This document shows positions 5,070-64,000 of a stretch of DNA of 64,000 nt, one piece after another. Made by a program: the position numbers and the translations under genes. This DNA is from Bugula neritina (taxonomy: Eukaryota; Animalia; Bryozoa). Positions within the stretch are counted from its first letter, which is position 1. Each line of letters begins with the position of its first letter. The notes below the pieces were generated by a model that was not told where the DNA came from, did not search any database, and worked only from the letters and a program-made list of their open reading frames with translations. Where the stretch lies: NCBI GenBank assembly GCA_964035545.1, contig OZ037765.1, positions 34,347,504 through 34,411,503 of the forward strand. The letters are read 5' to 3'.

Positions 5070-5246
5070 GTGTGTATTATTTAATTGTACATATATAATG
5101 ATATAGAGTAGGAGAAACTCTACTAACTATACAATATTAATTCATGACTTGGCTGTTAAAATATGATTATAGAGTGGTTTGTGCAGTACATGTGTACTTG
5201 ATATTCAGGTAGATGACAACTCTCAATACTCTGTTAGTAAAAGTAT

Positions 5247-9893: not shown

Positions 9894-10435
9894 TTGCATT
9901 GCTGTGATTTTAGTTTGAGGTTTAAGAATTGCTTTTTTTCAAATTTCTCCAACACCCGAGAGTGCATATCAACCTAATTTGTGTTTTATAGAATTATCCT
10001 CCAGTCTGATTTTACCATGGGTGTTGATTCCAAGGGAGATGCTAGAGTTGACCTTCACTGCCCACTGGACCAGCTCTGAAGGTGTGTTTATATGTTTTCA
10101 GTAAAGTCTAGTTTGGCTGAAGCAGAATCTCACAAAGTCCTCTGCACCATAATTTGTCCTGTGATGAGTTTCTAGGCTCTTCTCAGAATCTAGTAATTTA
10201 TATTCTACTTCAAGAGTATTGAATAAATTGCAGCAGGTAATGATGAAGTGAGTTAAACTCAGAACTCTTTCAGAGAAGGTATGAATTCACTCTAACAGGT
10301 GGACTTACTCCCCCATTCCTCAATGTGTATTACATGTGTCCACTTTCTCATTTCTCTATATATTCTACACAGAGTATCTCCCCTGTCCCTTGATACCAGC
10401 TGCTGAAATTCTCTTCTACTGGCTGTTTGGGAGTT

Positions 10436-10802
10436 GGTGATAGTGTGTTGCTAGGTGATAGTGTGTTGCTAGGTGACAGTGTGTTGCTAGGTGATAGTGT
10501 GTTGCTAGGTGATAGTGTGTTACTAGGTGATAGTGTGTTGCTAGGTGATGGTGTGTTGCTAGGTGACAGTCTCTTGCTAGGTGACCGTGTGTTGCTAGGT
10601 GATAATGTGTTGCTAGGTGATAGTGTGTTGCTAGGTGATAGTGTGTTGCTAGGTGATAGTGTGTTACTAGGTGATAGTGTGTTGCTAGGTGATGGTGTGT
10701 TGCTAGGTGACAGTCTCTTGCTAGGTGACCGTGTGTTGCTAGGTGATAATGTGTTGCTAGGTGATAGTGTGTTGCTAGGTGATAGTGTGTTGCTAGGTGA
10801 TG
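10436..10802. repeat. 18-bp minisatellite (GTGATAGTGTGTTGCTAG)n, about 20 copies
   Basis: Direct; the paralog at ~58961-59090 has about 7 copies. Confidence 0.93.
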
Positions 10803-12345: not shown

Positions 12346-12650
12346 GTATTAGGGCTAGTAGCTGGACCAGTATTAGGGCTAGTAGCTGGACCAGTATTAG
12401 GGCTAGTACCAGGGCCAGTATTAGGACTAGTAGCTGGACCAGTATTAGGGCTAGTACCAGGGCCAGTATTAGGACTAGTAGCTGGACCAGTATTAGGACT
12501 AGTAGCTGGACCAGTATTAGGGCTAGTACCAGGGCCAGTATTAGGACTAGTACCAGGGCCAGTATTAGGGCTAGTAGCTGGACCAGTATTAGGACTAGTA
12601 GCTGGACCAGTATTAAGACTAGTACCAGGCCCAGTACCAAGGGGACTAGT
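12346..12650. repeat. 24-bp minisatellite (GTATTAGGGCTAGTAGCTGGACCA)n
   Basis: Direct; starts where similarity to the 60765 paralog ends. Confidence 0.93.
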
Positions 12651-13435
12651 AAGGCTACTGCTATGCATTTTCCACTGTGTATGCAGACAAATTCTACATG
12701 ATTTAAAGATTTTAAACCATCACAGTTGTTAGCCTTGACATAAATATTTTAACCATAATAATAATAATGGAGAAAGGTTGTGTTCCAGATAAGAAAAACA
12801 TGTTACTGTTACAATATAAGGTTCTACTAACTCAACAGTCTGTAATAGAGGTGTCACTCCAATAGCCAATATCCAAGCTGTACAAGCTGGTAGGAAATCT
12901 GGCCGCCTGTAAGGCAGTTAGCCAATCACCTCAGGTTAGCTTGTAGATTATCTACTAAAGACTATAAACCACATTATATTCCATGCCCTCCCTTTTATAG
13001 AGATGAACTACATTATATGCCAGCCGTACTCCCAGTGGTTTATAGCTTTATAACTGTAGAACCAAGACTAGAAGGACATAAACATATCATCTACCTGAAG
13101 GTTTAACCAGCTTGAATAACCCAGCTATTTCCAAAAGCTTCAATTAAAGCTAAAGTAGAAATATGCTTTTTAAAGTTTCCTCATTAAAGTAGGTTCTGGA
13201 GGGAATCTTTGCAGTTTGTAAACTCATGAACAGAGTACCTTTAGTGACAGATTCCATGAATTAATTGATTTGACTTGTATATTTTTATTGCATGTCTCTT
13301 AACATAATCTTATGAAATTTTTTACATAATAGTAAGTATATACTATATAATAATAGTAAGTATATACTATATAATAACTTTGCTGCATAATGACAATATA
13401 GCAGCAATAGAACTGGTCATTCATAGTATAAATAA

Positions 13436-15987: not shown

Positions 15988-16652
15988 TAAGTGACTGAAA
16001 AGTTAGTTCACTTTTGTTGTAGTTGTGAGCAAACTACTAGAATTGTTAGTTATGAATGTGTGTGTTGTAGTTGCTAGAAAATAGTCATATTTTGCTTCAA
16101 GTTTAAGAGAGAGAACTGAGTTTGTAATGGTAGCAGAATGAATATATTTAGATTACTAATATAATACAACAAGCTATACACTAGTTTGCTAGTACTGAGT
16201 CTACTAGCCAGGTGTAGTGTGGGCGCTTGTGAGGGGGTGGGGGACAACGGAGGGAGGCACAACAGTCCAAATTTTGAACTTTTTGCTCTCATTCGTCTGT
16301 TTTTTCAAGTTACTAGTTCAATAATCTCTAGTCTAAATGCTACACCAGTTGTTTATTATAGGTATCAGTTTTCACAAAGTTTGCTAAACTCAAAATGAAA
16401 AGAATTTAGCAATTATTTGATGTTATAAAATCTCTCAGTACATCATCTTACAGGTGTTACTTGATTTTACATCCTTTCTAGAGTATATTATATGATATAA
16501 CTATATGGCTGGTATACATAGTACCAGTATAGATATGTTACAGAAATGTCAAAAGCTAGCTTTAGTTTCTAGTACTCTACCATGTATATAGTTGTTACAG
16601 ATGAGAATGAAGACTATTAAATACAACTAGAGCTGTAACCTGTGACTACAGG

Positions 16653-16689
16653 ATGGGCCAACGTAAATCTGTACCTAGAGACGAATCAA
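16653..16689 (+). pseudogene. Orphan first coding exon of the family ([12 protein letters not shown])
   Basis: Matches 2601-2637 and 43764-43800 including the GTTAGT donor; no LRR-cap exon 2 follows until 44666. Confidence 0.8.
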
Positions 16690-16884
16690 GTTAGTAAATC
16701 ATATAAATACTAAGTAACCATGGTAACTACAAAACTTTATATTTTACTTTTATGTGTTATGACATTTAGGTGTAGTAGTGGAGAAGTGGAGATAGCATAA
16801 GTTCTTTATTGTTCTTAACAAACTATAGGTTGGGGTGCGGGTTTACATTCTCACGAGAACATAACTTCTTTTGCTATATTTCTA

Positions 16885-18280
16885 CATAACTATTATACTG
16901 ACTTATATCATATTATATTATATTACATTATACCATATTATATCATATTATATTATATTATATTATATTATATTGTGTTATAGTGGTGGTCACCTTTCAC
17001 TGCCGTGTGGCCGGATCACACCATATTATATTATAGTATAGTATGTTGTTTTATTATACTGACATATATTATATTATATAACAAATATAATACTGACCTA
17101 TACTATAACATGTTGTTATTGTAACTATTACACTAACCTACATCATATTACATTGTACTATAGTATAATATTATATTAATATACCATAACACATGCAGTA
17201 CAGAGCTATAAATATACTATTATACTGACATATATATAATATTATATGACAAATATGATGCTGACCCATACTATAACATGTTATTATTGTAACTATTACA
17301 CTAACCTACATCATATTATATTGTACTATAGTATATATTATATTATATTAATTTACCATAACACATGCAATACAGAACTATAAACAACATGGCCATGTTA
17401 ATCCTTTACATACAGTTTCACTTAGTGTACAGAGTATACAGAGTAAAATATAAATATATTATGTTATATTTTATTTTCCTTAGAGCTGTGTTCTGCAGTC
17501 CACAACTGAGTAACTATAGTAACCAGAGGGAGTAGTAATGTTGTCTGTATTATGTTGTTAGTGTTTATTATATATTATATAATATTATATTATATTATAT
17601 TATAACAGGATTTGGGATTTCTGATCACCTTGACCTTTGACCGCTTTTGACATTTACAATAACTGTTGAGTGTCTTTTCCTAAACCCCCCCAATCCAAAC
17701 CTATACCCCCATCCCAACTCCCCAAACTCAATATTGTAAATGCGCCACCTATTAAATGCCATCAACTTTTTCACCGATAGTCTAAACACAATATTTTCCT
17801 AAATTCTGAGAATAGCATGTTTATTGTTATACTCTAATGACTATACTGTAGTTATATTACATGTAAACTATATACAGTATCACAGCTACATCTATTACCA
17901 GTCACTATACAGCTATTCACATCTGTCACTATAGTATGTCAACTGCAAGTTTTCCTGTTGGCTGGTTGCCAAAAGTCTTCTATAAACTAGAACTAATACC
18001 AAAGAGTATACATAGCTTGAGTGGGTATCATTATTCTAAAGGTGTCCAACGCCAATACCAAAGAGCATACATTTCAACAACCTATCATATCCTCATATAA
18101 ACACTATTACTTGCAGTGCAGCACTAACTAGCACACACTAAGAGGGAAGTCACTTATCCCTTCCTAGACTCATAGTGAGAAGATAATCAAGTTAGTTTAT
18201 GGAGGATATTATGTAACATATGCAGATGGTGAAGAGTATCTCAACTCACCTGCTGACTTCGTTTTAATTCACTGTAAGTA
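16885..18280 (+). repeat. Local duplication, paralogous to ~890-2230
   Basis: Colinear near-identity, including the 36-bp GC island and the putative 5'UTR exon block. Confidence 0.85.
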
Positions 18281-18514
18281 CAATTTATTCAGTTAGTTAT
18301 TAACTACTAAGAAATGTAGCTGAATACTAATATATATAAGTTGGTTCCCTTTAGTTTAGGTAAACCAAGTGACACATAATGAGACAGTCCCATAGTTCAT
18401 TACACAAGTCTAAATCTTGAGGATGTATTCTTGAAATAACATCAGTTTCAGTGTATTACTAGATCAGCCAGTGTGTTAAGATACATAGCAGCAACTAGAA
18501 TACTTCTTCAATAT

Positions 18515-29810: not shown

Positions 29811-32752
29811 TGTTGATTGACCATAGTTTTTTAGCTGGTGTAACCTTTTACCATTGGCCTAGTTATACTAGGCTGAAATGGCTAGAACTTTCCTCAGGAT
29901 GTGAGCTTATCCTGATCCTAGTAAGGGTGTCTGCTGAATTAATGAGCATTTGTTTTCAGCTACTCCAAGTAGTGTCAGCCAGTCTACAATCTTGTATAAA
30001 GCTCCAAAGGCTCCAGTTACAACGGGATGACTTTTTTGATGTTTTCCAAAGGCGGGTTTATTCTAGTGCTAAATTCTGATATTTTCCTAACTTTTCGAAT
30101 TTTTTTCTTTTACTCTGTAGTTAACAGGGACTGTGATATCAATTATCGTTGTTTCAGCATTATGCTTGTCAACTACTAATATATCGGGTCTCCTAACTTT
30201 GATGACTACGTCAGTGTGTATGTTAAAATCTTACAAGGTTTTCACATTATCATTTTCCAGTACTTATTCTGCTTGATGGCCGTACCAATTCTTACTTTTC
30301 TGAAACCCACGAAGTTCACACAACTACTATTGAAATTATCAATGCCAAAAGGTTGTGTTTTTTCTTATATTCTCCTTCTGCTACCTTCTCAAACTCACTC
30401 AATACGTGCATCGAAGTTTTGTCTCTTGCGTTACACATTCCACACTTCTTGCTACCCTGTTCTCTCATCATAGCCACTTTATAATTTCTAGTAGTGAATA
30501 GTTGATTTTGCGCAGCTGTCAGCAGTCCTTCTGTTTCCTTTTTCAGCCAACCATACTTCAACCAGTTCCAGGAAAATGCTTTCATGTCTTCCACCATTTT
30601 GATGTATTGACCACGTGAAGCTTTTCTTTACACTCATCAGTTCTTTCTATCACTTTATCATTATTTAGTTCTACCGCTGTTCTGTCTTTTAGGAAGGTAT
30701 TCAGTGTGGTGTTTCTATCAGTCTATGTTATATTTATGTAGTCTGACATGCTGCAGTTTTCAATCTTTATGCATTTTTCAGTTGACAACATTCTTCTACC
30801 GCCTTCCCTTCTGCTAAAATACAGCCTGCCTACATCTGCTCTCGGATAGGGTGCACGGTTTGTTGTCATTAGCTTCCTTGTCTTTCAGTCTATATTTTTT
30901 AGCTCATGAAACAGTTCAGTCAAGTATTCTAGCTGTGTAATGCACTGCTGTTACTGCCCATGTGTTTATTGCTTTGATTGTGTTCTCACCATTCAGTTTT
31001 GAATCCAGAACTTTTCTTATTTGTTTGTAGTACTCCTTGATCTTATTTTTCATTTCATATATTTGTATTCCATCAATCTCAAGAACTCCTAGATATTTAT
31101 ACAGCTTCTCACCCAGATCTTTGATTACCTGTTCATCAGGCAAACTGATTCCTGTGTCCTTAATTTTCTTTCCCTTTCTCATAACCAGTGTGGCACATTT
31201 TTTAATCCAAATTTCATTTCTATATTCCTTGTGAAGATCCCGGCAGTGTTTACCAAAGCTTCCAGTTCCCACTTTGATTTCCTATTTACCTTCAGGTCAT
31301 CCACATATAGGAGATGGTTTGTTTTCTGTCTCGTCGAAATTTGCATCATTGAGCCGCTTCTGTCATGCGAATCGGTAGTTGGAGAAAAGGGATAGAGATA
31401 AAGAGTCTCCTTGGAAAATTCTTAGTTTGATCTTTATTTCTCCTATCTTTTCTTCCAGGTATTTCAGTTGTGTTTTCCAGGTTTCATGCTTTTTCTTATC
31501 AACCTTATGACATTAATTGCTGTTCCAGTTGTTTGCATCGTTTCTAAGATCTAATTTCCTTGTCTTTACATATGCTCCAATTTGTTGCTAACTTTATTTA
31601 GTCATTCTGCATTGGTATTATTTTTAGTTGGCTGACCCCATATATTTTATCAGAATGCTTTTGATTTCCTTGTCAGGTGCCTCTTTAGATGTACGTATTC
31701 ATTTCCTCGTAATTCTTGATAAAAGCGCTTATCATTGTAAACATTGTGTCCTGATTATATTGATCAACTCATTCTGTATATCTGTTTATCTTCTGGCTTA
31801 CAGCTCTCAGGTTTTGCTTCAGTTTTTCAATCACTACACCACACTCTTTGTTCTTTATCCTATATTTTTCTTCAACCATTCTTCTCAATGAATCATTGTA
31901 AGCTCTACTTTTTCACTCTGCTATTTTACTTAAGTCTGATCTAATTTCTTTTTATTTCTTCTGCAGTCGTATTTTCCATACTTGTACATTGTCAGTTTTT
32001 CTTTTTCCTTTTTGTTACACACTTGTTCTGTTACTATTTTTCGCACAAGCCATGGTGGTGTTATTAAGCTCAATGGTATTAATAATCTCAACACAGTTTA
32101 GCACATCATTAATCTGTTTTACTGCCTGTAGTAATTTGACCCTCTCAATGTGCCTAAGGGCTCTTAGTGTTGGTCGATCATTAGTTTGTTATGCTCATTT
32201 ATAATTTTTCTACTAACACTTTTTCTACCTCTGAACTAGGTACTCTTAAAATTCTCATGGCTGATTTATATGCTATCTCATGTTGTACTATAACATCCTC
32301 TATTTGCAAATTTAGCTCTTCATTATCTTCTTCACCAATTGATGTGCCTAGTTCTTGCAAGGTTCCTTCTTCAATCTTATGGAGTTCTTCTTCCATAAAA
32401 TGCTTGTGTTTCTTCATAGTTCTTGCTTAATCCGCTAGTCTCTATTCGCTGATGTTAAACTCTCCTCTGTTTTCCAGCGTTTGCACATTCTTTTTAAATA
32501 ATTCTTTGATCCGGGTCTACAGAGCTCATACATTGTTTTTCTATAACCTCCCAATTTGGGTGTACTTTTGAAGCAGCATTTCATGACAACTTTGTTGTCT
32601 TCTCTTGAGTATCTTCTTTTAGTTGTGCCATTAACGGGTTGACGGCCGTAGGTTGCCTGGCCCTCCACATACCCACTGCCAGACGAGACATGCCATGTTT
32701 AGTTAGACATACCATTAACGTCGTTGGCTTTATTAGTTCTATTTTAATGGAT
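29811..32752 (-). mobile_element. Decayed RLE-type non-LTR retrotransposon (R4/Dong-like), nested in the 23-kb element
   Basis: Minus-strand RT motifs IFQGDSLS (~31395-31420), NHLLYVDDLK (~31290-31320) and YKYLGV; LKKETEGLLTAAQNQ plus a CxxC...H knuckle; HTDVVIKVRRPDI...IIDITVP restriction-like endonuclease. (TAA)n at both flanks; many stops and frameshifts. Confidence 0.88.
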
Positions 32753-43763: not shown

Positions 43764-45925
43764 ATGGGTCAACGTAAATCTGTTCCTAAAGACGAATCAA
43801 GTTAGTAAATTATATAAATATAAATACTACCAGTAGCTGCAGAACTTTTACATTATACGTTTTTATGAGTTATATGACATTCAGTTGCAGCACTAGAGAA
43901 ATTGAAGTAGCATTAGTTTTATAATTCTCTTAAAAAAGTTTGCATTGGGGTGTGGTTAAAAATCTCATGAGAACATAACTCTATTTGTTACATTTCTGAT
44001 CTAGAAACACAAGCTTTGTTCAACTTTTTATTACTTTGCACCTAACTTTGTATTCACCACAACTGGGTGCATTATTGTATAATGTTATATACTGAAGCTT
44101 ATATTATAATAATATATTAAAGTATAATATATTGTTATACTGACATATATATTATATTATATCACAAATATGATGCTGACCTATACTATAAAGTGTTATT
44201 ATTATTTTATATTATATTGTAGCTATTATACTAACCTACATCATGTTATGTTACAATAATTATAGTAACCTTAGTTAACTATTATAACATGCACATTTTA
44301 CTGACCTATATTGCTTTATATTACATTATATTACATTATATTACATTAGAATACTATAACACATACTGTACAGAAGTATAAACAACATGGCTACCCTTTA
44401 CCTGTCATCTGCTATAGCTGACGTCTGCACCAGTTACAGGGATGAGTCATACTCTTAGGTATAAACTGACAAAGTGGGCACAACTTGAATATATATTCAG
44501 ATTTTATCACAGGATTTCAATTTAATTATCTGTAATTTTAAGTAGTTAAAATATAAAATGTTTATTGTGTAACTATTGCCAGTTATGGTTCTATGCATTG
44601 ATAGTGTTTACAAACATTCTATTATTATAAAAACTTTTATTTATAAAGTTGCACATATTTTATAGAGAAGTACGAGGTGTGGTTCAACACATCCAGTATA
44701 GATGGAGCTGATGATGAGTGGATGTGGAATAGTACTAGATCCTACACTATAGAAGAGATCAGAAATAAAAGTAGACATCATACAGTTACTCATGTTGAAC
44801 TGGTGTATGACATTCCTCCAAATATCAACAAACTGTTTCCTCATCTCACACATCTGAAGGTATCTGGAGTAGACAGTAATGCTAACTGGACCAGGTATTA
44901 TGTTGTTATAATTTATAACTATATTCATAAGTGAGATATTATCTTGTAGTAGAATGTGGAGTAATCTCCCCTCACAAAAACACTAGCTTTAGTAACAACT
45001 TTTGTATTATTTACCTTATTTATTGTATTTCTATTTATGTTTCAATTTAAAGTAAGTTGGTGTCATTCAAACATATCAATAAACATATAATGTATAATAG
45101 TATGTGATAATTATGTAGAATTGAATATACTGTTACACCTGTATATAATTATTATGTTACAGCATATCTTCACTGAAGAATCTTGAGGTATTGAATATAT
45201 CAGATAATAACCTATCTGAAGATCTACCTGACAATATATTCACATCCTTACTATCATTGAGAGAGTTGAACATGGAGAACTGTAAACTGTCAACTCTACC
45301 AAACAGGTGTGGATTATATTATACATTATGAAGTTATCTGCACTATCTTTATTGAGTCAACTAGACTCTGTGTATATGATACGTCACAAGTCAATTATTG
45401 TATTCTTTTCTATTAGATATGTACTCAGATAGAAATGGTATATCAACTTCTCACTTATTCCTCTAATAAATTATTTTGCTGTGTAACAGTTTATATTGGC
45501 ACCAGGTATAAAATTTGTTATAATATAGAATTATATCCATATAAGTTAGATACTCTCTTGTAGCTGAGTGTAATGTGAAGCTATTATACATTTCTCTTTA
45601 AAATAATCCGAGCCTAAGCAGCAACTGCTGTATTATTTATCTGACTTTTAGTGGTCAGATCAAGAGTTAAATAAAACTAAATTATTCTTATTCAATAATA
45701 TTATTTCTATATATAGTAGGTCAACTTACTACCTTTTCGTTATCTTACAGCATATCTTCACTGAAGAATCTTGAGGTATTGAATATATTTGATAATAAGC
45801 TATCTGAAGGTCTACCTGACAATATATTCACATCCTTACTATCATTGAGAGAGTTGTACATGAAGCACTGTAAACTGTCAACTCTACCAAACAGGTGTGT
45901 ATTTTATTGTAGTGTAGAATAATAT

Positions 45926-46008
<83 letters not shown>

Positions 46009-49000
46009 TTATATATTTTTATATTTTTATATTTATATATATACGTATACATATACGTATATATATAATATACATGCCAATTATCTACTGAATATTTTAA
46101 AAATAGCATAAATTACGTAGTATTACTATGCCTATTTGCATCCAATTTACTAGTTTTACATTTATGGCAACTGTAATGTATTTTGTTTAAAATGGTTATT
46201 GCAAGCATTATTCAATTATTCATATATTCACATTGTAATCACAGCGAAACTTGAACTTTATAGCTTTGTATTTAAGTGCATGAGTGAGTTTTAAATTTTC
46301 TTTTAGGTTTATATGCATAAAAAATGTGTTTAAAATATTTACCAATAAACAAAACTAAAAAGATTTACACATAAAAAAAATAATATAATAATAAAAGTGG
46401 CAAAATTTTCTCTTTATAACTTATAATGGCGCCCATATGATTCCCTAAGATTTCCTAATAGCGGCACTCTTAATGTATATACCACTCTGGACCTTAACTA
46501 TGCTGTGGATGTACAGTTCTAACTGATATAACTTATTACTGTGATGAAAGTCTATATTTCTTCTTCTGGTGGACAGAGTGACTTGTTTCTTGTTATTTAT
46601 AGTAGTCAAAGTTCCTTCTGTAACATGGCTACATAAGGGTGTGATCTCTAATACCCGCATAACAACATTCTTCAAGAAACGCAGACTATATATGAATATT
46701 GCAGTTTTCATGTTCCGTCACTATAAACATGTTAATAATCTCAGCACTACATGTATATATGCTAAAAGTTCCACCATGCTTTCATATAACATGTATATTA
46801 TGTTTCATACAGCATATCTTCACTGAAGAATCTTGAGGTATTGAATATATCAGGGAATAACCTCTCTGAAGGTCTACCTGACAATATATTCACATCCTTA
46901 CTATCATTGAGAAAGTTGGACATGGAGATCTGTCAACTGTCAACACTACCAAACAGGTGTGTATTATATTATATATTATGCAGTTATCTGCACTATCTTT
47001 ATTGAGTCAACTAGACTCTATGTATATTATACGTCACAAGTCAATTATTGCATTCTATTCTATTAGATGTACTCAGATAGAAATGGTATATCAACATCTC
47101 ACTTATTCCTCTAATAAATTATTTTGCTGTGTAACAGTTTATATTGGCACCAGGTATAAAATTTGTTATAGTATAAAATTATATCCATATAAGTTAGATA
47201 CTCTCTTGTAGCTGAGTGTAATGTGAAGCTATTATATATTTCTCTTTCTCTTTGAAATAACCCCAGACTTAGTAGCAACTGCTGTATTATTTATCTGACT
47301 TTTAGTGGTCAGATCAAGAGTTAAATAAAACTAAATTATTCTTATTCAATAATGATACTTTTATATAGTAGGTCAACTTACTACCTTTTCGTTATGTTAC
47401 AGCATATCTTCACTGAAGAATCTTGAGGTATTGAATATATCATGGAATAACCTATCTGAAGGTCTACCTGACAATATATTCACATCCTTACTATCATTGA
47501 GAGAGTTGGACATGGAGTGCTGTAAATTATCAACTCTACCAAACAGGTGTGTATTATATTATAGTGTAGAATTATACTGTAATATGTATAATATATAAAC
47601 ATATGATTAATATAATTGTGTAGAAACTTATGACATATTATTTTACCATAATCAGAGTGACTTATAATATTATAATTATGTCTATATTGAGATATAATAT
47701 AACGTTATACTAAGATATAATATAATATTATACTGAGATTAATTATAATGTTATTCTGAGATATATTATAATACTATACTGAGATATAATATAATGTTAT
47801 ACTGAGATATATTATAATGTTATATTAAGATATATTATAATGTTATACTGAGATATATTATAATATTATACTGAGATATATTATAATATTATACTGAGAT
47901 ATATTATAATGGTAGTCAATCCATAGTTACTGGGTGATGCATTGTATCATTTACTTTAATTTATCAAATACCTGGTAGTAGAACTCCTAACATAGCTATA
48001 AAATAAATATAATAGTAAACTACAATTATTCCTAACACCTATACATAAAGCTATAAATATAATTGCAGAATCCTATATACTATTTATTATAATGGTATAT
48101 ATTAGAAAGTATAATATGAAATTATATTATTTATTTTTGTACAAAACAGTATTTCTATTTCTTTCAGCATGCAGAGTCTACAGAAGTTAGAGCTACTGTA
48201 CATAGCAGGCAATAAGTTCACCAGTTTACCATCTCCTGCGTACACACTGAGTAGTTTGCAAAAACTGAATATATCTTCCAACTACTCCCTGACATCCTTA
48301 GATCCTGAGATACTACAGCTAACTCAACTTCGTACACTGTATGTTAGAAATTGTGATGCTCTCACCTCTCCTCCACTAGAAGTATGTGAGAGAGGAGTAG
48401 ATGCTGTGAGACAATACTACACAGACTTGGCTAAAGGAGCTGGTAGAAGTCTTCCATTCGCTACTATAGCTGTGCTGGGTAATACTATGGCTGGGAAGAC
48501 CAGTCTAATCAGAACATTACAGAATGCTGACAGAAAGAGAGTTCTGACTAACAGAAGGCCAGATGCTGTGAAAGATGAGACAACAAAGGTGTTTAATGTT
48601 GAAGAGGTGGGGGTGGATGGTACAGTACTTCGTGTCATTGATATGGGAGGCCAGGAGGTCTACCATATCACCTATCAACTGACACTGAGACAGAACTGTA
48701 TTCCAGTCATAGTAGTCAACATGGAACAGTACGAAGAGATCTTAAATGATTCAACACACAGAGAAGCTGTTAGAAGATTAGCTTTTGATTACATGTCTCA
48801 CCTCTATCTGGCTAACCCAATTCTGGGTGCTCCAAAACTTATCTTCACACATAAAGATAAGTTTCAAAATGCAGAATTTCAGGAGCTTCGAAAGAACTTT
48901 CTAGAAAGTTCGAATCAACTGTGTGAGGAAATGATTAGGGAAGAGAAAGCATTGGGTAGAGAATTTGCTCAAATCAAACATTTTAGTGAATCAGCTGGAA

Positions 49001-52000
49001 GAGTCTTTCCTGGTAAGGACATTTATGAGGTGGGGAAAGATGATAAGTATGAAGTGTTTGACCTGATCAAGGAGTCTCTTCTTCAAAGCAGTCACCATTT
49101 TGTGAAACCTTTACCTCTGGTCTGGGAGGAAGTAAATGAAAAAGTGCTGTCTATTCCCTCTGTGTACAGCACCTTTGATGAGATACTCAAATACGTGCAA
49201 ACCGAACTTCAACAAATTGAGTCAAGTCAGCTGGACATAATCCTCACTTACATGCATGACTGCGGCAAAGTATTGTGGTATAAAAATATCAGCTCTCTCC
49301 GGCCATACGTATTCCACAAGATTTCACAAGTCACCAAACTTCTCTGTGTCTTGTATCATCATGATGCTAACATCTGGCAGAGTAGAGTTAACAAGTTCCA
49401 GCCGTGCTATTCAAAGGATGGGATGCCTGTTGAGAAGCAGGACTTTGAGGAATCCGTTAATCATTTCACTGACACTGGTTTGATGATGCAATCTCTTCTT
49501 GTCTATTTGATTCAAAATGAAACAATATTCCACAGTTTTGAGAATGTTGAAGTTGCTATCTGCTTACTCCAGACGTTCCGTTTGCTGCACGGTCCAATAC
49601 ATAGCAAGTCTGAAGACCCATGGTTCATTGTACCTCAGTTTGCTAAGAACTACTACAGCACTTCTTACTCACCACCCAAAGACATGCTGCTTCATGTTGA
49701 GACACAATTCAATGGTCTAGCCCTGCCACACTATGTCTACCACCAAATGACAGTCGGCTTGTTGGAGTTGTTTCCCGGTGATTCTCCCAGGATAAAAGTG
49801 AGAAGAAATGGAGCCAATGTCTATCAAGATGGAATCTACACACAGCTGGTACACGACCATAAATCTAGAAAAATTTCACTCCACGTGTCATCTGATGCTG
49901 CAAACATCAGCAGAATGTGGGAGAGACTCATCACCACCAACAACAACATCCTTAGACATGTTCTACAAACTTGGAAAGCAACTAGACCAGTCACTACATG
50001 CTACTGTGCTCACTGTCTTCTGCTAGGACTTCCTTGTCCTAAGAAAGTGCAAAGACCTCAATGGTGTCTTCGTTCTTTACAACATTCCACACCGAGTTCC
50101 AGACTGTGTAGTGGAACTTCAACAACTCTGTGTGGTGATGAGGAGATCCCAAGTGCTCTGCTCTACCCATGTATGTTTATTTGTATTGTAGTGCAATGCC
50201 TGTAAAATTATATTTTACTGCAATTTACCAAATGTGTGCATTTATTTGAAAAGGAATTATTCATTGATATAACTGTAATGCGGTTTCACGACACCCGACT
50301 GTATAAATTTCTAAGCAATTCATTGTTTCAGGTGAACCACTGTCTGAACGAGAAGCTGATAAGTTGGAGAAGTTTGTGAATGAACTGAATGTTCGAAGAC
50401 CTCAAGAAAGATTAGCTAATTCTGGTGAATACATTATGACCAGTTTTTACAAGCTTGTGTTCTTTAAAAGTTTTACTTTATTTAAAAATCTTATCACAAG
50501 AAATTCCTGCATTGCATCTGAATACCAAACTGCTAGCCGTCATAGTATTATGTTTTTTACTTATTCCTTGTGTAGCTAAGTATTGTAGTGAGTAGTGCAA
50601 GTACAAATACAGGAATCGCCCTCTCCCTACTCTTGGAATACTTAGACTCTTATGTAGCAACCAATTAGCAGCTCCGGAAGATATGCTTCCGATTCACGTG
50701 ACACTTCCCGGGTTATTAACATTATATCACGTTGTTGTAAGCGGAGGCTTGTAGTAGTAACATGTGTTAGTAGTTGACTCTTGTATAGGATAATTTGATG
50801 TGATGTTTGGTTTATGCTTTATTGTGGATAATAAATATAATTACTCGACAGCTACCCTAGTAATTGATAACAGAATAACCAGCTAACTATACGCAAGTAA
50901 ATAACTCACGCTCAGTAATTGCACAAATTACTACAGTATTGTAGTCGGTTTATACTTTATAGCCGCCGAAAGTAGCCAATCAGATCTTTTGACCACCGCA
51001 ATAACAGCCAATGACAATCTCAGTGATCTTTCTGATGATGAGGAGAATCTGTACCCTGATGGAAAGGAAGTTGAAGAGATGAAGTTTATAAGACTCAGAC
51101 TGAATCCTACCAGTAACCTAACGATAAGACAGCTGTTCTCAAACACTGACAAGGTGATCGCTTCTTATATATGGCTATGTCCTTTATTTTTGCCAGTTGT
51201 TTAGTTCAGCAGTAACAAGTATTTCTCTGTTACATCCAGGTGTTTACTATGACTAGAAAAAGAGGAAGAGCTCTGATAATAAACAACAGGAGCTTTGATA
51301 AGAGACCAGATTTGTGTAGGAAAGGTTCAGATGTGGATGTTGAGAATATGTCTGCCATGTTGAAATCTCTCAAGTTTGATGTTGTGACACACACAGACCT
51401 GAAGGCTGAGGTATGTTTTGCTGCTGCTTTACTTATCAAGATAAAAATGGAACTTTTTGTTAGTTTAAAAAAAGCATCCATATACAGTATTTTACTGTCC
51501 CATACTTTCTAGGAAATGCTGTCCGCTGTTCAATCTGAGGTGGAAAAAGAAGAACACGAAGATCTGGGATGTCATGTGTTGGTTATCATGACTCATGGAG
51601 GACTAAACAACCACATCTATGGTACAGACCTGAAACGAGTGAAACTAACAGATGTGTATGATATTCTGACCCCTTTGAACTTCCCAGGAATGGCTGGCAA
51701 ACCAAAGGTTGTTATACTGGAAGTCTGCAGTGGAGGTAATCAGTTGATACAACATTTGTGGTTACTTCGGAGCTGTGTTCTTTTGACTGTTAGTAAATGA
51801 TTAAATGTGTCTATATTGCTGTTCATTTATGCTATTAACTAATCATGTGGGTATTTAAAGTTGCGTTTATACCTTCACGATTTTCGGTCAAAATTTCAAT
51901 TTGGCCGGGTTGAAATTTCTCCGAGTTGCATTGCATTGTAAAAGCCACCCGTTGAAATTTTTGTACTGCAATAACTTAATCGGCCAATTTTAGAATAGGA

Positions 52001-53730
52001 GTAATAACTCCTTGTAAACATTGTTATTTAGTTATTACTTTGGCGATTAGACAACGTACTTATACGGTTATAATTATATAGCCTACGCTTTCTCAATTAT
52101 CGCTTTTATGCTTTCCGCTTCACTAATTCACGACATTTACAAAGGGCATCAAATAGCTATTATGCGAGTCAAATTTCAATTTCAGAAAGTGAGCAACCAC
52201 ATCAATATGATTTCAACGAGTTTAAGTTTGACTATAAAGGGGTACCCGGAAAAGCGTTATTAACCTAAACTCGGTACTTTTTTCAGCAGAGGTATAAACG
52301 CAACTTTAGACTAAAGCTGATAACTGCTGAAGTAGAGTAGGGCCAAGCGTGGCGTGACGTGCTAGAAAACCCGTTTAGGCTAAGAATGGGTTTTCATGCG
52401 TCTAACATGCTGAGGGAGAAGTCCGGCAAGCTTGTGCATGTTTGATCTAATTGGCTTATTATAAATTAGCGAGAACTTTTCTTTTATTTTAATTCAAAGT
52501 TTAGCTTTTAGCGAACTGAATTGAAACAGTTTCCTATATATCTAAAGTCGATGACGTAGAACAAATGTCTGAAGGCGAGCAGTAAAGTTTAAAGCTAACA
52601 TCATTAGCAAATAAATTTCTGCACTCGAAACTCACGCATTATGGCCCTCCGCTAGAGTCTTCATAGCATTTATTTAATACAAATTATACATGAGTGAAAT
52701 AAAGTACATAAGTGTGAAGAATTACATAACATGACAAATACTAAGCATGCAAGCTAACTTTCTAAGTGCTAATACCCAACTGTGTTCTGCTGATGCACTC
52801 TGCTAATGATCCTGTACCATTAGTTCCATCCCAAAGCATTAGCTCCATCCCAAGCATTAGCTTCATCCCAAAGCATTAACCACAGCTTCTGATGCAGCAA
52901 TGTATTAGGTATTAGCTGAGTGTATCGTAGATGATGCAACATTAGAGTAGCAGAGTTAGGGTAGAAGTTGTCTTTTCACCACAATATACCCACTTTCAGA
53001 GTTTTCTACATGTTTTTCTATTTGACATTATTTTTACTCATCATATTAAATAAATATAATATTATGAGATCTGTATTACAGAGAGAAGTGATTATGGCCA
53101 AAAAGGTATAGACAGATTTGATATCGGAGAATCACAGAAGGAAGGGGAGAGTATCTCTCCTCCACTTGCTAAAGTTCCTGGAGACAAAGATGCTGAGGCT
53201 ATGAATAGACTGAACTATGATGACCTGCTAGTAGTGAAATCTAGCATGGAGTGTAAGTAACACACATGTAATAGAGTATTAGGTTACACAGATGCTATAC
53301 ATACACTGATGTTATTTATAATTGTAGAATAATTCACATTACTGACTCTACTTGTAGCATTCATAGCAAAGGTTCACCCTGTGTATGGATCACTAATGAT
53401 TAGAGCTCTTGTATCTTCCATGTATAAACATGCCTGTCACCATGACCTCTACACTATATTCAAACAGGTGAGTATATTGTTACTATGTTAGAGGTGTTTG
53501 GAGGCGTGTCATAAATAGGTTATTTAGAATCATCTGGTACATAATAGTCAGATTTCACTGTTGAGTTGCTAAACATTCTTCAGGTACAGACTAAAGTGAG
53601 AAAACTGTGCTTAGATAAAAATCTAGAGAGTGGAGGACAGTTGGTCGTAGTCTGGGATACTCTCACTCATATGAGAAAACTTTACCTGTTTCCTAGGTTT
53701 AATGGCCACAAAAGAGAAGATGACTCTTAG
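43764..53730 (+). CDS. Myristoylated LRR-Roc-COR-caspase (Roco-caspase fusion), 1316 aa. join(43764-43800,44666-44894,45163-45306,45751-45894,46813-46956,47403-47546,48168-50170,50332-50424,50963-51153,51240-51410,51513-51735,53082-53252,53358-53467,53584-53730)
   Basis: All 13 introns are GT-AG, all phases are compatible, total 3951 nt with no internal stop, TAG at 53728-53730. Domain motifs are listed in the sub-features. Confidence 0.88.
45163..47546 (+). CDS. Four 144-nt two-LRR cassette exons (45163-45306, 45751-45894, 46813-46956, 47403-47546)
   Basis: Each reads [48 protein letters not shown], bounded by ACAG|C and AACAG|GTGTG, phase 2-2. Confidence 0.93.
45927..46000. repeat. (TA)n microsatellite in the intron between LRR cassettes 2 and 3
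   Basis: Direct. Confidence 0.95.
47690..47910. repeat. ~23-bp AT-rich intronic minisatellite (TATTATAATGTTATACTGAGATA)
   Basis: Direct, degenerate. Confidence 0.75.
48168..50170 (+). CDS. Large exon: last LRRs + Roc GTPase + COR (MFHAS1/LRRK-like Roco core)
   Basis: [22 protein letters not shown]-to-Roc hinge; P-loop GNTMAGKTS (48478-48504); DMGGQEVY (G3); FTHKD (Roco-type G4); COR motifs [27 protein letters not shown]; C-terminal CYCAHC cysteine cluster. Confidence 0.93.
51240..53730 (+). CDS. Caspase (peptidase C14A) domain, five exons
   Basis: [21 protein letters not shown] (His 51594), [13 protein letters not shown] (Cys 51726), then p10 [47 protein letters not shown]. Confidence 0.92.
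51859..52305. mobile_element. Kolobok-like MITE in a caspase intron
   Basis: TIR AGTTGCGTTTATACCT / AGGTATAAACGCAACT, flanked by TTAA / TTAG. Confidence 0.7.
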
Positions 53731-54401: not shown

Positions 54402-55070
54402 TCTGTACACTATACTATATCTATTTTATACTCTATACAATATCTACTCTATACACTATACTATATCTACTCTATACACTATACTATATCTACTCTATAC
54501 ACTATACAATATCTACTCTATACACTATACTATATCTACTCTGTACACTATACTATATCTACTCTATAATACACTATACTATATCTACTCTATACACTAT
54601 ACTATATCTACTCTAAAATACACTATACTATATCTACTCTATACGCTATACTATATCTACTCTATACCCTATACTATATCTACTCTATAATACACTATAC
54701 TATATCTACTCTATACACTATACTATATCTACTCTAAAATACACTATACTATATCTACTCTATACGCTATACTATATCTACTCTATACCCTATACTATAT
54801 CTACTCTATAATACACTATACTATATCTACTCTATACACTATACTATATCTACTCTAAAATACACTATACTATATCTACTCTATACGCTATACTATATCT
54901 ACTCTATACCCTATACTATATCTACTCTATACACTATACTATATCTACTCTATACACTATACTATAACTACTCTATACACTATACTATATCTACTCTATA
55001 CCCTATACTATATCTACTCTATACCCTATACTATATCTACCCTATATACTATACTGTATTAACTCTATAC
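54402..55070. repeat. 23-bp minisatellite with a higher-order pattern of 23/25-bp variants
   Basis: Direct; same unit as 5247-5531. Confidence 0.93.
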
Positions 55071-57130
55071 TATATATCGAGGGCTACTGAAAGGGAATAT
55101 TTCATGGCGAGGGCCACATTGTAAAATTTAACTTGGGCTGGAGGCCACAGCATCTGCAATTCAAAATAACTTTATTACAAATGCCTGTGAGTCATTACAC
55201 AATGAAGTCCCAATAATTAGGTACTGCAAGCTTCATGTTTTTAGCATATATAAAAATGGGGCATTTAAAAGGCTGTTGTCCACTCGAATTCATATACCTG
55301 TGCAAATAGTTTTATCTGTTATGCCTTTGAAGGCCACATAAATGTAGGAGGGGGGAGGCACATCCAGGCCACCTGTTGGACAGCCCTGCTTTAGGCAACG
55401 AGCAATAAATATTTTAGGAGTTGTATTCCTTTAGAGTGAAAATTTCCTTTGCTTCGGATATGGTTTTCAACAAAAAATTAAAACATTTGAAAATATATAT
55501 AAAAATACGCTCTTATAAAAAACTTTTATAAATAAATTCGATTGTAAAAACTGAATTTGTTAATAATTGTAGTACGCGAACGACAGGATAAAACCATTAC
55601 ATGTGCAGTTCCGGCGTAAAAAGTCATGGCTACTACCAGTGAATCAACCGCAACTGCAATAAATGATACTTGGGCCATTGCTTCCTTTTCAAAGGCGAAT
55701 GAATTTTTGGGATTCTCTTCATTTGACACTAGCAATGTTATTTTGACAAATAGGCAGTCTATGTCAATATATAAGGTAACATATTTCATTTTCTGTAATG
55801 CTGATTTGAGGATTTTTTTATAAATATAATAAAATTAATATTGTACTAGTAGTAGTACAGTACTACTAGACACTAGTATGATTATAACTACAACCAGGAG
55901 TACTTTTAGTAGTATTAGTACTACTACTAGTACTAGTAGTACTAACAGTACTACTACTAGTACTAGTACTAAGCGCTAAAACAGTAACCAGTGCCCGGTC
56001 CAGAGGCAGCAGACGTTGTAGTACTACTACTACTAGTACTAGTGGTAGACTGGTAGGACCTGTACGTTGACACTGCAGTAAAAGTCATACTTATAACGTA
56101 GTTACACTTTGACTTTCGATTTTTTGCTTTTATTTCTAGTGTTCGTAGTACTAGTAAAACTTCTACTAAATCTAGTTTATTTCTAACAGTAACTGGTGTG
56201 AGTATATCTAAACTAAGATTAGTAAAAACACAAATTTAGTTAGTTACTGTAACACTAACTATTATTTAGAGTCTACTTCATGACTTGTATTTGTACGAAT
56301 AGTGATAATCACAGTATGAATAACTCAATAACTAATAACTTTAAGCGAAGCTAAGTTAAAGTGTTTTAGTAAAATTAAATAACAACTTACTCTTACTGAC
56401 TAAACACTCGGTCAAAGTCATTCACGGTCGCTAAAAGTGAATAGTGGTATAATAGTAAAGTCAATTCAGCGTAAGGCTAATGCAGCTCTTAGTGACTTAT
56501 TAATTATTATGAAAATCGATGTAAACACGCAATAATTTTTTCAACTTGAATTTGAATTGACTAATTCGTAATAACTATAAGTATTGGATTAAATCAGTTG
56601 ATACTCGCGTTTTAATTAAGCCTTTCGGTGAATGGCACTGAGTCCTAACACATATTTAAAGTAAATTTCAGTGATAACTATTGAGTATTGAAATGTGATG
56701 ACACACATTTACTAACTTAGCCTTTAATTACTTTAAAATTTATTTCATTCATACTCAGTCGTGAGTAATTAGCATAAATCAACCACTGTAGTTCAATTCT
56801 AAATCATACTCAATCACGATAGCCTTTATGTTTTTGCTAAACTAAATCTAAATGGCCTTAAAATTTATACCATGATGAGTTGTTTGTATCGCTTTTAAAA
56901 TGATCTTAGAATTTTGTTATTGAGTTGAGGAAATAAATTTAGTTATTTCAGAGTTTCACCGGCCTGAATGAGTATTCTCTGCAGTAGAGCCTCTTTCTCA
57001 TATAAATCACTGTGGAATAAATTATTACTGAAAGTAATGACTCTACATGTGTTTTTATGCTTCATTCATGTGAGTAGTTTTCAGTTTAGAATATTAATAA
57101 ATACTAGAGTTTGAGTTGTGATAAACTTAG

Positions 57131-58494
57131 GTGAGTGATCAGCAGACAGTATCAAGTTGTACTCTCAAATCAGAGAGCAGTTTCTGTCTGCCTGTGGTTT
57201 ATGATCACGGAGAAGAACATTATGTTGGTTTGGTTGAGAATCTTGGAAAGAAGAGACTTTGTGTCTGGACAAATGAACTTTCTAACTACAAGGACTGGAA
57301 GAAGAAACTGGTAAATTTCTCACTTTGAATATTTCAGTTGTTTTGTGATTTATAAGATAATATGTTTACAATAACACAATTTGTTGGTCATTTGGTGGAG
57401 TATATTTATAGAATAGATGAAGAATGATAACCTAATGATGGTTGGTTCATAATACAAGTGTAACTGTTGTAGTTATCAACTGAGGTGACTGAACTGGTAG
57501 AAGTAGAGAAGACAGAACCACTGGTGGTCACATCTAATAACTGTGTGTGCTGGTTGTCTCATGTGGAGGACACTTCACTGTCTCTCCATCTGCTGCCTCC
57601 AGATCTGAGAGATGCTGACGTGGAGATTAGTGAGTTTAAAAGTTACAGATGGAGTAATAGAACTGAGATTGTCTACATTGTGACTGTTGATGTGAGTATC
57701 ACAATGTGTCAGTAAGGTGTCACAATGTGTCAGTATGGTGTCACAATGTGTCAGTATGATGTCACAATGTGTCAGTATGGTGTCACAATGTGTTAGTATG
57801 GTCTCACAATGTGTCAGTATGGTGTCACAATGCGTCAGTAAGGTGTCATGGTGTGTCTGTAAGATGTCACACTTAACCAGTAGAGTGTCAATATATACTG
57901 TGTCTCTGTATGACGTCACCTTTACAATAACCAGTTTATCTGAAATACTCTATACAGGTGGTAAGGATGAGATACTATACTCTACCGGTACATCTGAAGA
58001 AGTTATTTCCTCTCTCAACTCACAGTTTTCTACTCAGTGTGTCTCTCTTCACCTACTAGACTCTGACCAGCTTCTCATTGCAACATCTCACAGCTCTACG
58101 AATACAGGCTAGTATAGTTTACCTTTTCTGAAGATGATTGTTCTAGTAAAGTAGTTCTACTGTAACTGTATGCCTCCTTTACTTGAATATGAGTAGATGT
58201 AAGCCAATCAGTGTAGCTGCTCTCATAGCACCTGTTTAGAGGTGTCACAGCTCAAGTATGGTGACATGTGCTGGTCTTGTAGGTGTTTTACTTATATTCA
58301 GTATCATGTTCAGAACTACGAGGGTTCTAAAGAGTCTGGACAGTGAGCTCTACGGTGATAAACCTGTGACTCTTCTACCTCCATACATACTGACCCACAC
58401 GGAGAGCTCATTGCAGGCTCACTCATATAAGTACAGCAAGTTGACACTAAGGAGCATGATGGGCAGTTTGAGACTGTCTGCTGATTCTGAGTTC
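57131..58494 (+). pseudogene. NOL11: Second partial NOL11-like copy; one internal exon deleted
   Basis: Exons 57131-57310 and 57473-57691 are open (LSTEVTEL); the GRHLVYKL exon is missing (junction ~57890); no C-terminal exons found. Confidence 0.7.
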
Positions 58495-58789
58495 GTGAGT
58501 TACCAGGTTATTCAGTGAGTCACCAGGTTATTCAGTGAGTTACCAGGTTACTCAGTGAGTTACCAGGTTATTCAGTGAGTCACCAGGTCATTCAGTGAGT
58601 TACCAGGTTATTCAGTGAGTTACCAGGTTATTCAGTGAGTTACCAGGTTATTCAGTGAGTTACCAGGTTATTCAGTGAGTTACCAGGTTACTCAGTGAGT
58701 TAGCAGGTTATTATTCAGTGAGTTACCAGGTTATTCAGTGAGTTACCAGGTTATTCAGTGAGTTACCAGGTTATTCAGTGAGTTACCAG
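58495..58789. repeat. 20-bp minisatellite, about 15 copies
   Basis: Same unit as 9390-9893. Confidence 0.93.
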
Positions 58790-61494
58790 AAAAGGTATGA
58801 ATTCACTCTAACAGATGGAGTTATTCCCCCATGTCTCAATATGTATTACATGTGTCCACCTTCCCATTTCCTGATATATTCTACACAGTTCTCCCCGGTT
58901 TCTTAATACCAGCTGGTTAAACTCTTTTCTACAGGCTGGTTAGGAGTTAGCAGTTACTAGATGATAGTGTGTTGCTAGGTGATGCTGTGTTGCTAGGTGA
59001 CAGTGTGTTGCTAGGTGATAGTGTGTTGCTAGGTGACACTGTGTTGCTAGGTGATAGTGTGTATCTAGGTGACAGTGTGTTGCTAGGTGAGGCCGTGTAG
59101 TAACTAACTGTACTATTGAAGGAGAGATATCTTGGAGTATTTTTTATGTTTGACTCACTGTTACAAGTTCATAGGACTTGCTTGATATCATGTGCAAGTC
59201 CTTTGAAGTTGACTTCTGAGTTGACAGAACAGTAAACCACCAGCTCAGTCACATGACTACAATCCACTCAGTAGTAATCTGTACTAGAATATATTCTATC
59301 ATTACATCTCAATACTTACATCTACTGTTTAATACACCAACACTAACAACAGGCATTACATGTATTTAGTTATTTGTATTATGTAATTAGTGAGTGACAG
59401 TGACATTACAACTATCCAACTGTTTAGTACACCAACACTAACAACAGGCATTACATGTATAATTTAGTTATTTGTATTATGTAATTAGTGAGTGACAGTG
59501 ACATTGCAATTATTCAACAGTTTAGTACACTTGCACTTGAGAGTTGCCATTTTGTAATTATCTAAGTTTTCTTTGCTGTAAGTTAAACATGGAGATTTGT
59601 TAGAATTCACATTTTTATTAAAATACTTCAAGATAACTTGACCTTGTCACCACTCTAATACTTATAAAACTGAAGCAATCTTTATGCTGTAATATATGAA
59701 TAGAGACATTCAATCTATTTGATTACCTCCTATTACACATCTATACTACTTTACTCACATCCTTCTCTTCTCACAGGATTATAAACAATGAAGAATTACT
59801 AACCACTGCCATTATTAGTTATTTGTTACATTTTCAAGGTTAACCAGAGGGTAAAGCAGTGCAATGAATAAACTGCATCTAAGTTCAAAGCTGGAAATGA
59901 CAGTTTTATATCTTATATATTTTCTTTTTTATCATTCTATAGGGATAACTATCTTACTAATCATTGATTTACATTTATTCTAATTGACAAAAATCACCTA
60001 CTTGAAATAAATAATATATGAAATATTGAAAGATGCTCACTAAACTAGATTGAATAGTATTGGGGTGCCAACATGCAAGAATAGTGTTTCCTGTTTGGGT
60101 ATCAGTGAGCTTCATATATACTGCAAATTGTGAAAGAAGCAGGTGCTGTTACTCTACTATAAAGAGACTGCTCTTCACAGTGATATGTCAATTACATAAC
60201 TTTTAGTCTTGAAGAAATGCTCCCTCTGTATCTTATGGTTCAAGAGAAGAGTTTGGACTCTGTATTGTGGCTGATTATATTACATGTGTGCATAGGATCA
60301 AAATGGCTAAATTTACTATCAGTGAGTTAGTTCTGGAATATTACTACTTCATGAGTCTAGACTTCAGGACCTCAGCCTATATTTTAACCCTTAGATGCTA
60401 ATAATTACTTGCATATTGGAACCAGTAATATGGTGGCTTACTTATAAAGGTGAGCATTAAATAGATCCATGGAAAGACAGAGATTGGTGTGTCCCACAAG
60501 GCTAGTTTTGCATGTTGGCATCTCATTACAGATAATACTATTAGTACTTTGCTTTTATTAGTCTATAATTATCATTTTAATATATACATTGATCCACCCA
60601 AACTTTATTTGGAGAAATTAGCATTTAAATCAGCAAAAATAGTCCTTCAAATAGCTATAATAGATGAGAGGTTAGTTTGTAGGCAACACAGCTACTGTTT
60701 GAGTTACTCATAAAGCTAATGTAGAGGAATTCATGATAATATGTCTTCATAAAGATGCAAAGGTAATACATATTATGTTGTCTCTGTATCTCATCTTACC
60801 CTTGGACTTTGCTTATTGACTAAGCTGTGTAGTTTATCAGTGAATGTAAATATGGGTGGATCATAAACACTGATAAGGTAGCTATGATATAATATTATAT
60901 ACCTGTATAACACAGTCTTCATTACTATTTGTAGAGTTAACAAGACTGTGACACACACTGCAGTCATAACTACCACAAAGTACAACTTGATTCAAGTAAC
61001 AGTTATACCTCAAGTATATACTAAAAGGTATGTGTTTATATATCACCATATGAGAGGTGGAGAGGAAAACTGGTGACCTTTCTCAGAACTAGGTCAAGGT
61101 ACATATGCAGATGGTGAAGAGTATCTCAACTCACCTGATGACTTCATTTTTTGGTTATGAATGTGTGTGTTGTAGTTGCTAGAAAATAGTGATATTTTGC
61201 TTCAAGTTTAAGAGAGAGAACTGAGCTTGTAATGGTAGTAAGATGAATATATTTAGATTACTAATATAAAACAACAAGCTATACACTAGTTTCCTAGTAC
61301 TGAGTCTACTATAGCCAGGTGTAGTGTGGGCGCTTGTGAGGGGGTGGGGGAGAACGGAGGGAGGCACAACAATCCAAATTTTGAACTTTTTGCTCTCATT
61401 CGTCTGTTTTTCAAGTTACTAGTTCAATAATCTCTAGTCTAAATGCTACACCAGTTGTTTATTATAGATATCAGTTTTTGTTTCTATCTCTTTC

Positions 61495-62478: not shown

Positions 62479-63839
62479 ATGGGTCAACGTAAATCTCTAC
62501 TTCGACCCAGACCTCCACCTCAAACTCCACCTAGACCTCCACCTACACCTCCAGCTCCACTTCCATTTCGACCTCCACTTAGTAAATCTCTACCTCAAGC
62601 TACGCCTCCACTTTCTGGTCAGTCTGTGTCAAGTTAGTAAATTATATAAATACAAGTACTTCAACTGCTAACTACAGAAATTTCATACTTTTTTTTATGT
62701 GTTATGACATTAAGGTGCAGTAGTGGAGAAGTTGAGGTAGCCTAAGTTCTTTATTGTTCTTAATAAATTATACGTTGAGGTGCAGGTTTATATTCTCACC
62801 AGAACATAACTTGTCTCTTACATTTCTTCACTACAGTTTCATTACTTTGCACCTAGCTCTGTGTTGACCATATCTGAGTATTATATTGCTTTTGTTTATT
62901 ATGTGATGTTATATACCTGCTTATATTATATACTATAACTATTATACTATAACAGTATAACTATTATACTATAACTATTATACTATAACTATTATACTAT
63001 AACTATTATATTATAACTATTATACTATAACTATTATACTATAACTATTATACTGACTTATATCATATTATATTATATTACATTATATTATATTATATTA
63101 TATTATATTTTATTATATTATATTATATTATATTATAGTGGTGGTCACCTTTCACTGCCGTGTGGCCGGATCAAATCATATTATATTATAGTATAGTATG
63201 TTGTTTTATTATACTGACTTATATTATATTATATAACAAATATTATGCTGACCTATACTATAAAGTGTTATTATTATTTTATGTTATATTGTAGCTATTA
63301 TACTAACCTACATCATGTTATGTTACAATAATTATAGTAACCTTAGTTAACTGTTATATAACATGCACATTTTACTTACCTATATTACATTATATTACAT
63401 TATATTAAATTATTATATATTATTATACTATAAAATATACTGTACAGAGGTATAAACAACATGGCTACCCTTTCAACTGTCAGAATATATCACAGGATGC
63501 ATTTTGAAGTTATAAAATATCCAAGTTTACTTCAATACTGTTTATAGTGTTGAGACACTCTGTTATTTGATATCAAAGTTATTATTTATAAAATGGTGAA
63601 TATTTTGTAGAGAAGTACAAGGTGTGGTTCAACACATCCAGTATAGATGGAGCTGGTTATGGGTGGATGAAGAATGATACTACATCCTACACTATAGAAG
63701 ATATCAATGATATAAGTAGACATCATACAGTGACTCATGTTATACTGGAGAATGACATTCCTCCAAATATCAACAAACTGTTTCCTCATCTCACACATCT
63801 GAGGGTATATGGAGTATACAGCAATGCTGACTGGACCAG
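62479..63839 (+). CDS. 5' part of a further paralog (exon 1 62479-62632 with proline-rich insert, exon 2 63611-63839); continues beyond the window
   Basis: MGQRKSLLRPRPPP...GQSVS-KKYKVWFNTSS...DWT; same splice sites and phases as the intact copy; the following intron matches 44895 onward up to the window end. Confidence 0.85.
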
Positions 63840-64000
63840 GTATTATGTTGTTATAATTTATAACTATATTCATAAGTGAGATATTATCTTGTAGTAGAAT
63901 GTGGAGTAATCTCCCTTCACAATAACACTAGCTTTAGTAACAACTTTTGTATTATTTACCTTATTTATTGTATTTCTATTTATGTTTCAATTTAAAGCAA

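Follow-up and report, generated by a model that had tools for sequence, protein, structure and literature searches.

A family of bryozoan LRR-Roc-COR-caspase genes with LRR cassette exons under diversifying selection

RESULTS

Gene organization at the locus

The window, by which we mean the whole 64,000-nucleotide stretch of the Bugula neritina genome that was analyzed, carries one open 13-exon gene on the forward strand (positions 43764 to 53730), with a product of about 1,316 residues as given by summed exon lengths with frames checked exon by exon. Exon-by-exon reading gives the domain order N-cap, LRR cassettes, Roc-COR GTPase, and caspase with a His-Cys dyad. The first coding exon (43764 to 43800, phase 0 to 1) begins MGQRKS, as do 7 of the 11 first exons found, and the Watersipora homolog P0040 likewise opens MGQ; this start agrees with what we take to be the N-myristoylation pattern and is a possible N-myristoylation motif. 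First exons are also present in the window at 2601 and 62479, and some paralogs lengthen the MGQRKS exon (43764 to 43781 here) with a proline-rich tract. The N-cap exon (44666 to 44894, phase 1 to 2) is followed by four LRR cassettes of 144 nt at 45163 to 45306, 45751 to 45894, 46813 to 46956, and 47403 to 47546, all with consistent frames exon by exon; the first, with two LRRs and in phase 2-2, is supported by Pfam as well.

A large exon (48168 to 50170, phase 2 to 1) then codes for three more LRRs, a C-cap, a Roc GTPase with a P-loop, and COR, with LRR_4, LRR_8, and Roc all above the Pfam cut-off. The Roc match scores 28.6 bits against a cut-off of 27, and the G motifs GNTMAGKT and DMGGQ can be read from the sequence. 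The COR-A match lies directly after Roc, in the correct place, and is weak (E=0.007, below the Pfam cut-off); homologs of full length, annotated as MFHAS1-like, have COR-A. No Pfam match to a STAND ATPase (NACHT or NB-ARC) was found in the gene, and its switch domain is Roc. We note that in the three LRRs inside the Roc exon (48169 to 48400), variation among 15 paralogs is by inspection also highest at the x positions of the repeats.

Two linker exons (50332 to 50424 and 50963 to 51153) lead to the caspase large-subunit exons (51240 to 51410 and 51513 to 51735), both of which match Peptidase_C14 above the Pfam cut-off (E ~2e-10 each) and contain the His (MTHG) and Cys (EVCSG). The residues around the Cys in the family are EVCSG or HACSG, not QACRG. 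The last three exons (53082 to 53252, 53358 to 53467, and 53584 to 53730, with the stop codon) have consistent frames and are 79 to 89% conserved in related loci, and a Pfam search of these short pieces gave no match; they probably code for the caspase linker and small subunit. The first-pass annotation of this DNA, which described the cassettes, missed the C-terminal caspase and the swaps of caspase type between paralogs.

Contigs of other colonies, from three runs that we guess to be RNA, span the exons and for the most part leave out the introns. The contigs join the N-cap exon to a cassette (GT..AG), cassette to cassette, cassette to the Roc exon, and the Roc exon, spliced at both its ends, to the first linker exon, all of these joins being family-level and not assignable to single paralogs. 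Mutually exclusive, Dscam-like use of the cassettes is not supported, as cassettes are joined to cassettes in these contigs. No splice isoforms were found in the RefSeq clusters. At a Watersipora locus (L052:28355-28495), a fifth intact cassette of 141 nt is left out of the RefSeq model P0049.

Other features of the window

Upstream on the forward strand is a truncated paralog with a first exon (2601 to 2637), an N-cap exon (3518 to 3749), and two cassettes (4017 to 4160 and 4926 to 5069), each in frame exon by exon. After about position 5100 it continues, without a Roc-COR-caspase block, into sequence matching that from 54779 onwards; the copy at 2601 to 12351 thus jumps after two intact cassettes into a copy of 54779 to 60768, at a 23-nt minisatellite, through either a real deletion or an assembly join. 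The start of the next paralog, with a proline-rich first exon and an N-cap exon, occupies 62479 to 64000 on the forward strand, and four cassettes and a Roc exon lie just beyond the window. Fragments of the 5' region of the gene, rearranged and with neither an N-cap exon nor cassettes, are found at 16374 to 18289. An open frame is duplicated on the minus strand (55529 to 55834 and 5923 to 6285), the first copy having a weak match to the WS/DGAT C-terminal domain (E=8e-4), and a 24-nt minisatellite at 12286 to 12729 is readable as an open frame of GPVLGLVA-like repeats. Broken frames on the minus strand at 30319 to 31281 gave no informative Pfam match and resemble what we take to be the end of a non-LTR retrotransposon reverse transcriptase.

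The six cassettes of the window

The first-pass annotation presented six cassettes of the window as interchangeable exons that vary almost only at ligand-face codons. The six (starting at 4017, 4926, 45163, 45751, 46813, and 47403) are each exactly 144 nt, in phase 2 at both ends, preceded by AG and followed by GT, and free of stop codons, and the peptides that it quoted are correct. The position that it reported as having six residues in six exons is position 39 of the 47-residue unit, or x8 of repeat 2 in the numbering LxxLxLxxNxL used throughout (L, D, N, H, I, and C). The six are not one set, however; four (45163 to 47546) belong to one intact gene, but those at 4017 and 4926 are in a separate truncated copy 40 kb upstream. 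Pairwise differences range from 7 to 20 nt, and although 8 of the 16 variable positions are x positions, the other eight are single changes elsewhere, such that "almost only" is overstated for these six. Similarly, the five-letter words used to describe the variable segments include x positions, but they also take in position 6, which is buried, and position 9 (Asn/Cys), and they omit x3 and x10 of repeat 2.

The family in the genome and in other bryozoans

The start pattern of the cassette has 157 matches in the 216-Mb genome versus 0 for the reversed control, and the cassettes thus recur far beyond chance. Roc-COR has 93 matches genome-wide, corresponding to at least 93 exons in clusters on several chromosomes, and the caspase exon has 135. 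By comparison of coordinate listings, all 29 of the closest Roc-COR exons have a caspase exon 2 to 12 kb downstream. Among 111 extracted cassettes, which give 105 different peptides, 109 are 144 nt, open, and flanked by AG and GT, and the remaining two (141 nt and 129 nt) are both in frame; the sample takes in 109 cassettes, from a genome total of at least 157, and 15 Roc exons, and leaves out minus-strand and C6 paralogs. Sampled genes have 2 to 9 cassettes each when cassettes are assigned to the nearest Roc exon.

The named homologs are from Watersipora subatra (32 to 38% identity), and the closest proteins overall, with up to 83% identity, are from JGI assemblies. The JGI colony is only 78 to 91% identical to the present genome even at apparently orthologous loci and thus represents a different lineage or species. 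Exons of 141 nt, in phase 2-2 and with two LRRs each, occur in two Watersipora genes and by inspection also differ at the x positions; the design is therefore older than the genus Bugula. We note that the flank of one ROCO-caspase gene in the JGI colony (L053:9384-14235) matches the present genome at C5:6.62 Mb, where no Roc exon is listed, which suggests that ROCO-caspase genes may change place between lineages. A literature search found no paper on an LRR-Roc-COR-caspase family in bryozoans or other animals.

Diversifying selection at x positions

Strong diversifying selection acts on eight positions of each cassette that are predicted to be exposed. Comparison of models M2a and M1a for 106 distinct cassettes gives a likelihood ratio of 497, and the class with omega of ~9.8 consists of exactly eight codons, all of them x positions (x5, x8, and x10 of repeat 1, and x3, x5, x7, x8, and x10 of repeat 2). 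These codon models are our own implementation, not codeml, and recombination breaks their tree assumption and can inflate omega; the same sites are recovered when each cassette half is analyzed on its own tree. With separate synonymous (alpha) and nonsynonymous (beta) rates, twelve x sites fixed beforehand have a beta of 3.4 and an alpha of 0.6, whereas at the eight selected sites alpha is 0.4, equal to that of the scaffold, and beta is 4.8, 12 times higher. The equality of alpha points to selection and not to a simple mutation hotspot, and hypermutation at the variable codons is ruled out on the same ground. In a tree-free check on 31 flank-matched pairs, x sites have a pN of 0.20, compared with 0.035 for the remaining codons and 0.046 for introns. 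The diversifying selection first proposed from six exons is thus borne out by codon models and by flank-matched pairs.

In an AlphaFold model of the LRR arm of Watersipora P0040, x3-L4-x5 forms a strand, and x7, x8, and x10 are in the loop after it. It is established for LRR proteins that x3/x5 and the positions of the following loop face the concave side and its edge (PMC3341825).

Exchange between cassettes

The scaffold between the selected codons is itself under little constraint, with an omega of ~0.6 to 1 (pN/pS is 0.58 overall and ~0.9 in close pairs, and a coarse grid gives equal alpha and beta). Its pS is 0.084, compared with 0.218 for Roc-COR between the same genes, and the two are uncorrelated; moreover, scaffold pS is equal within genes and between genes, showing that cassettes are homogenized across the family. 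The near-invariant scaffold and the scarcity of silent changes that the first-pass annotation remarked on are real, but they result mostly from this exchange between cassettes and not from strong constraint.

Swapping of cassette sequence, as well as gain and loss of cassettes, had been part of the same proposal, and both hold, the latter from the range of cassette numbers per gene and the former from linkage decay and half-exon mosaics. The formal signal of recombination is of modest size. Linkage declines with distance (p=0.02), and agreement between the two exon halves (0.28) is lower than that between random splits (0.41). The first 77 nt of cassette 4017 are identical to cassettes of three paralogs (with one nucleotide different in one of them), and at least 10 later positions differ; in two of the three, 1.9 kb around the matching cassette is 96% identical to the surroundings of 4017. 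In a second mosaic, at C1:34858212, the left half nearly matches one neighbor and the right half another. Exchange within and between genes recombines the variable patches while keeping the scaffold uniform. Germline gene conversion and unequal crossing-over would explain these mosaics, and the orphan cassettes at 4017 and 4926 could be conversion donors.

Exchange of the caspase end

Compared with the caspase exon of the window, those of the 29 closest genes are 88 to 100% identical in 15 and only 42 to 47% identical in 14. At least two caspase types, ~44% alike and both retaining the His and Cys, are thus present behind near-identical LRR-Roc parts, at C1:33.8-35.0 Mb and elsewhere. No grouping by caspase type is seen in the LRR and Roc parts, whereas the later part of COR follows it (0.15 to 0.17 within types and 0.20 to 0.26 between them), and well-supported branches require at least three changes of caspase type. 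Together these observations indicate that sensors have recombined with different COR-caspase ends. Three of the 14 more divergent genes have no match to the DNA of the second type, and a third caspase type is possible from these sequences.

DISCUSSION

A candidate family of germline-diversified receptors

The explanation that we favor, and hold to be reasonably probable, is that the cassettes serve as the sensor modules of single-chain LRR-Roc-COR-caspase proteins, a large bryozoan family whose members are most likely intracellular NLR-like receptors diversified in the germline. The domain order and the known behavior of caspases and ROCO proteins suggest how such a receptor could work. A ligand, either a foreign or an altered molecule, would bind the concave LRR face and shift the nucleotide and dimer state of Roc-COR; dimerization would unite two caspase domains, and activation by proximity would lead to cell death or signaling. 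A myristoylated N terminus may anchor the protein at the membrane. Birth and death of genes, unequal crossing-over, gene conversion, and selection, all acting in the germline, would generate the repertoire.

The main rival is that the family serves conspecific allorecognition in colony fusion and rejection, with variable LRRs reading polymorphic self proteins and the caspase killing mixed tissue. Bryozoans are colonial and show allo-incompatibility (PMC8195603), and concerted repeat evolution together with diversifying selection at few surface codons is the signature of the fungal het genes as well (PMC1805685). Nonetheless, ~90 clustered paralogs on several chromosomes are more in keeping with a repertoire of pathogen receptors than with a few histocompatibility loci, the exons of the gene show by eye neither a signal peptide nor a membrane segment, and we consider a role in allorecognition unlikely.

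Equally doubtful is a further layer of diversity beyond that of the germline, in which skipping of cassettes makes many isoforms per gene, or cassettes rearrange somatically, and cells or zooids come to differ. The phase symmetry of the cassettes permits skipping, the ROCO genes of brown algae have such splice variants (PMC11378527), model P0049 omits the fifth intact cassette of its locus, and orphan cassette arrays are present in the genome. However, a single annotation model is no evidence of isoforms, the RNA contigs join cassette to cassette with no mutually exclusive use, skip-like joins can stem from paralogs with fewer cassettes, and no intronic docking or recombination signal is seen beyond ordinary splice sites. 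We give rather little credence to a broader version of this proposal, a one-chain sensor-switch-executioner system, modular at both ends, in which LRR cassettes are also recombined during life, by skipping or by somatic conversion with orphan arrays (4017/4926, for example) as donors, such that zooids or cells of one colony would differ.

A neutral origin, in which tandem duplication and conversion were recent and surface codons were either mutation hotspots or under relaxed constraint, is largely refuted and very improbable. In its favor, scaffold omega is near 1, and simple pairwise counts show higher pS at the variable codons. Against it, the eight sites have the same alpha as the scaffold with beta 12-fold greater, nearly all sampled cassettes (109 of 111) are full-length, open, and bounded by AG and GT, and the Watersipora repeats by inspection differ at x positions too.

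Relation to known systems

The germline-diversified receptor family that we favor is by its sequence a ROCO-plus-caspase family, and it may work like NLRs though it is not NLR by sequence; membership in the NLRs is ruled out, as the switch is Roc and no match to NACHT or NB-ARC was found. Bryozoan immunity is little described at the gene level, and these strongly selected, germline-shuffled LRR exons of ROCO-caspases are apparently undescribed. If our interpretation is correct, then these genes, ~90 or more in number, would combine NLR-like evolution with an LRRK2-type GTPase and a directly fused caspase, an animal receptor design of which only parts have so far been described, and would support Roc-COR as a ligand-gated immune switch, with the fused protease offering a direct readout of the signal passing through Roc-COR from the LRRs to the effector, a matter debated for LRRK2 and MFHAS1.

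The variable lymphocyte receptors (VLRs) of lampreys also have LRR cassettes with a variable concave face, and VLR structures are among the sequence matches. VLRs are extracellular and somatically assembled, however, whereas the bryozoan cassette is a normal exon of an intact germline gene, and membership in the VLRs is ruled out, as all exons of that gene are in place in the germline, running on into a GTPase and a caspase. Vertebrate MFHAS1/MASL1, under which name the Watersipora homologs are listed in RefSeq, shares the LRR-Roc-COR arrangement without a kinase. MFHAS1 is a single gene not known to carry a caspase, in contrast to the large bryozoan family with its variable cassettes.

A parallel in exon design, which the first-pass annotation had drawn and which the LRR-Roc-COR assignment by Pfam upholds, is with the LRR-ROCO genes of brown algae, which have 72-nt phase-2 exons, four selected concave sites, and splice variants (PMC11378527). 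In both, the domains follow the order LRR-Roc-COR, the LRR exons vary in number and are symmetric in phase 2, the concave face is under positive selection, and the genes form clusters (PMC3341825, PMC11378527). However, the algal exons of 72 nt code for one LRR and the bryozoan exons of 144 nt for two unlike LRRs, and the algal proteins are described as plain LRR-Roc-COR, whereas the bryozoan proteins have an animal host and a caspase fused at the C terminus. The shuffled-exon ROCO genes of the two groups are likely of independent origin.

Bacterial conflict proteins that combine LRRs, an AP-GTPase (Roc), COR, and an effector are alike in having fast-evolving N-terminal LRRs, a Roc-COR switch, and a variable C-terminal effector, with caspase among the effectors (PMC8195603); they differ from the bryozoan family, which consists of intron-rich animal genes diversified by exon cassettes. 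The fungal het-d/het-e NWD receptors similarly exchange repeats within and between members and are under diversifying selection at few surface codons (PMC1805685), but with WD40 repeats, a NACHT ATPase, and an N-terminal effector in place of the LRR exons, Roc-COR GTPase, and C-terminal caspase of the bryozoan genes. Of the design proposed for the bryozoan family, brown algae show the shuffled exons, bacteria the order of the domains, and fungi the concerted evolution of repeats.
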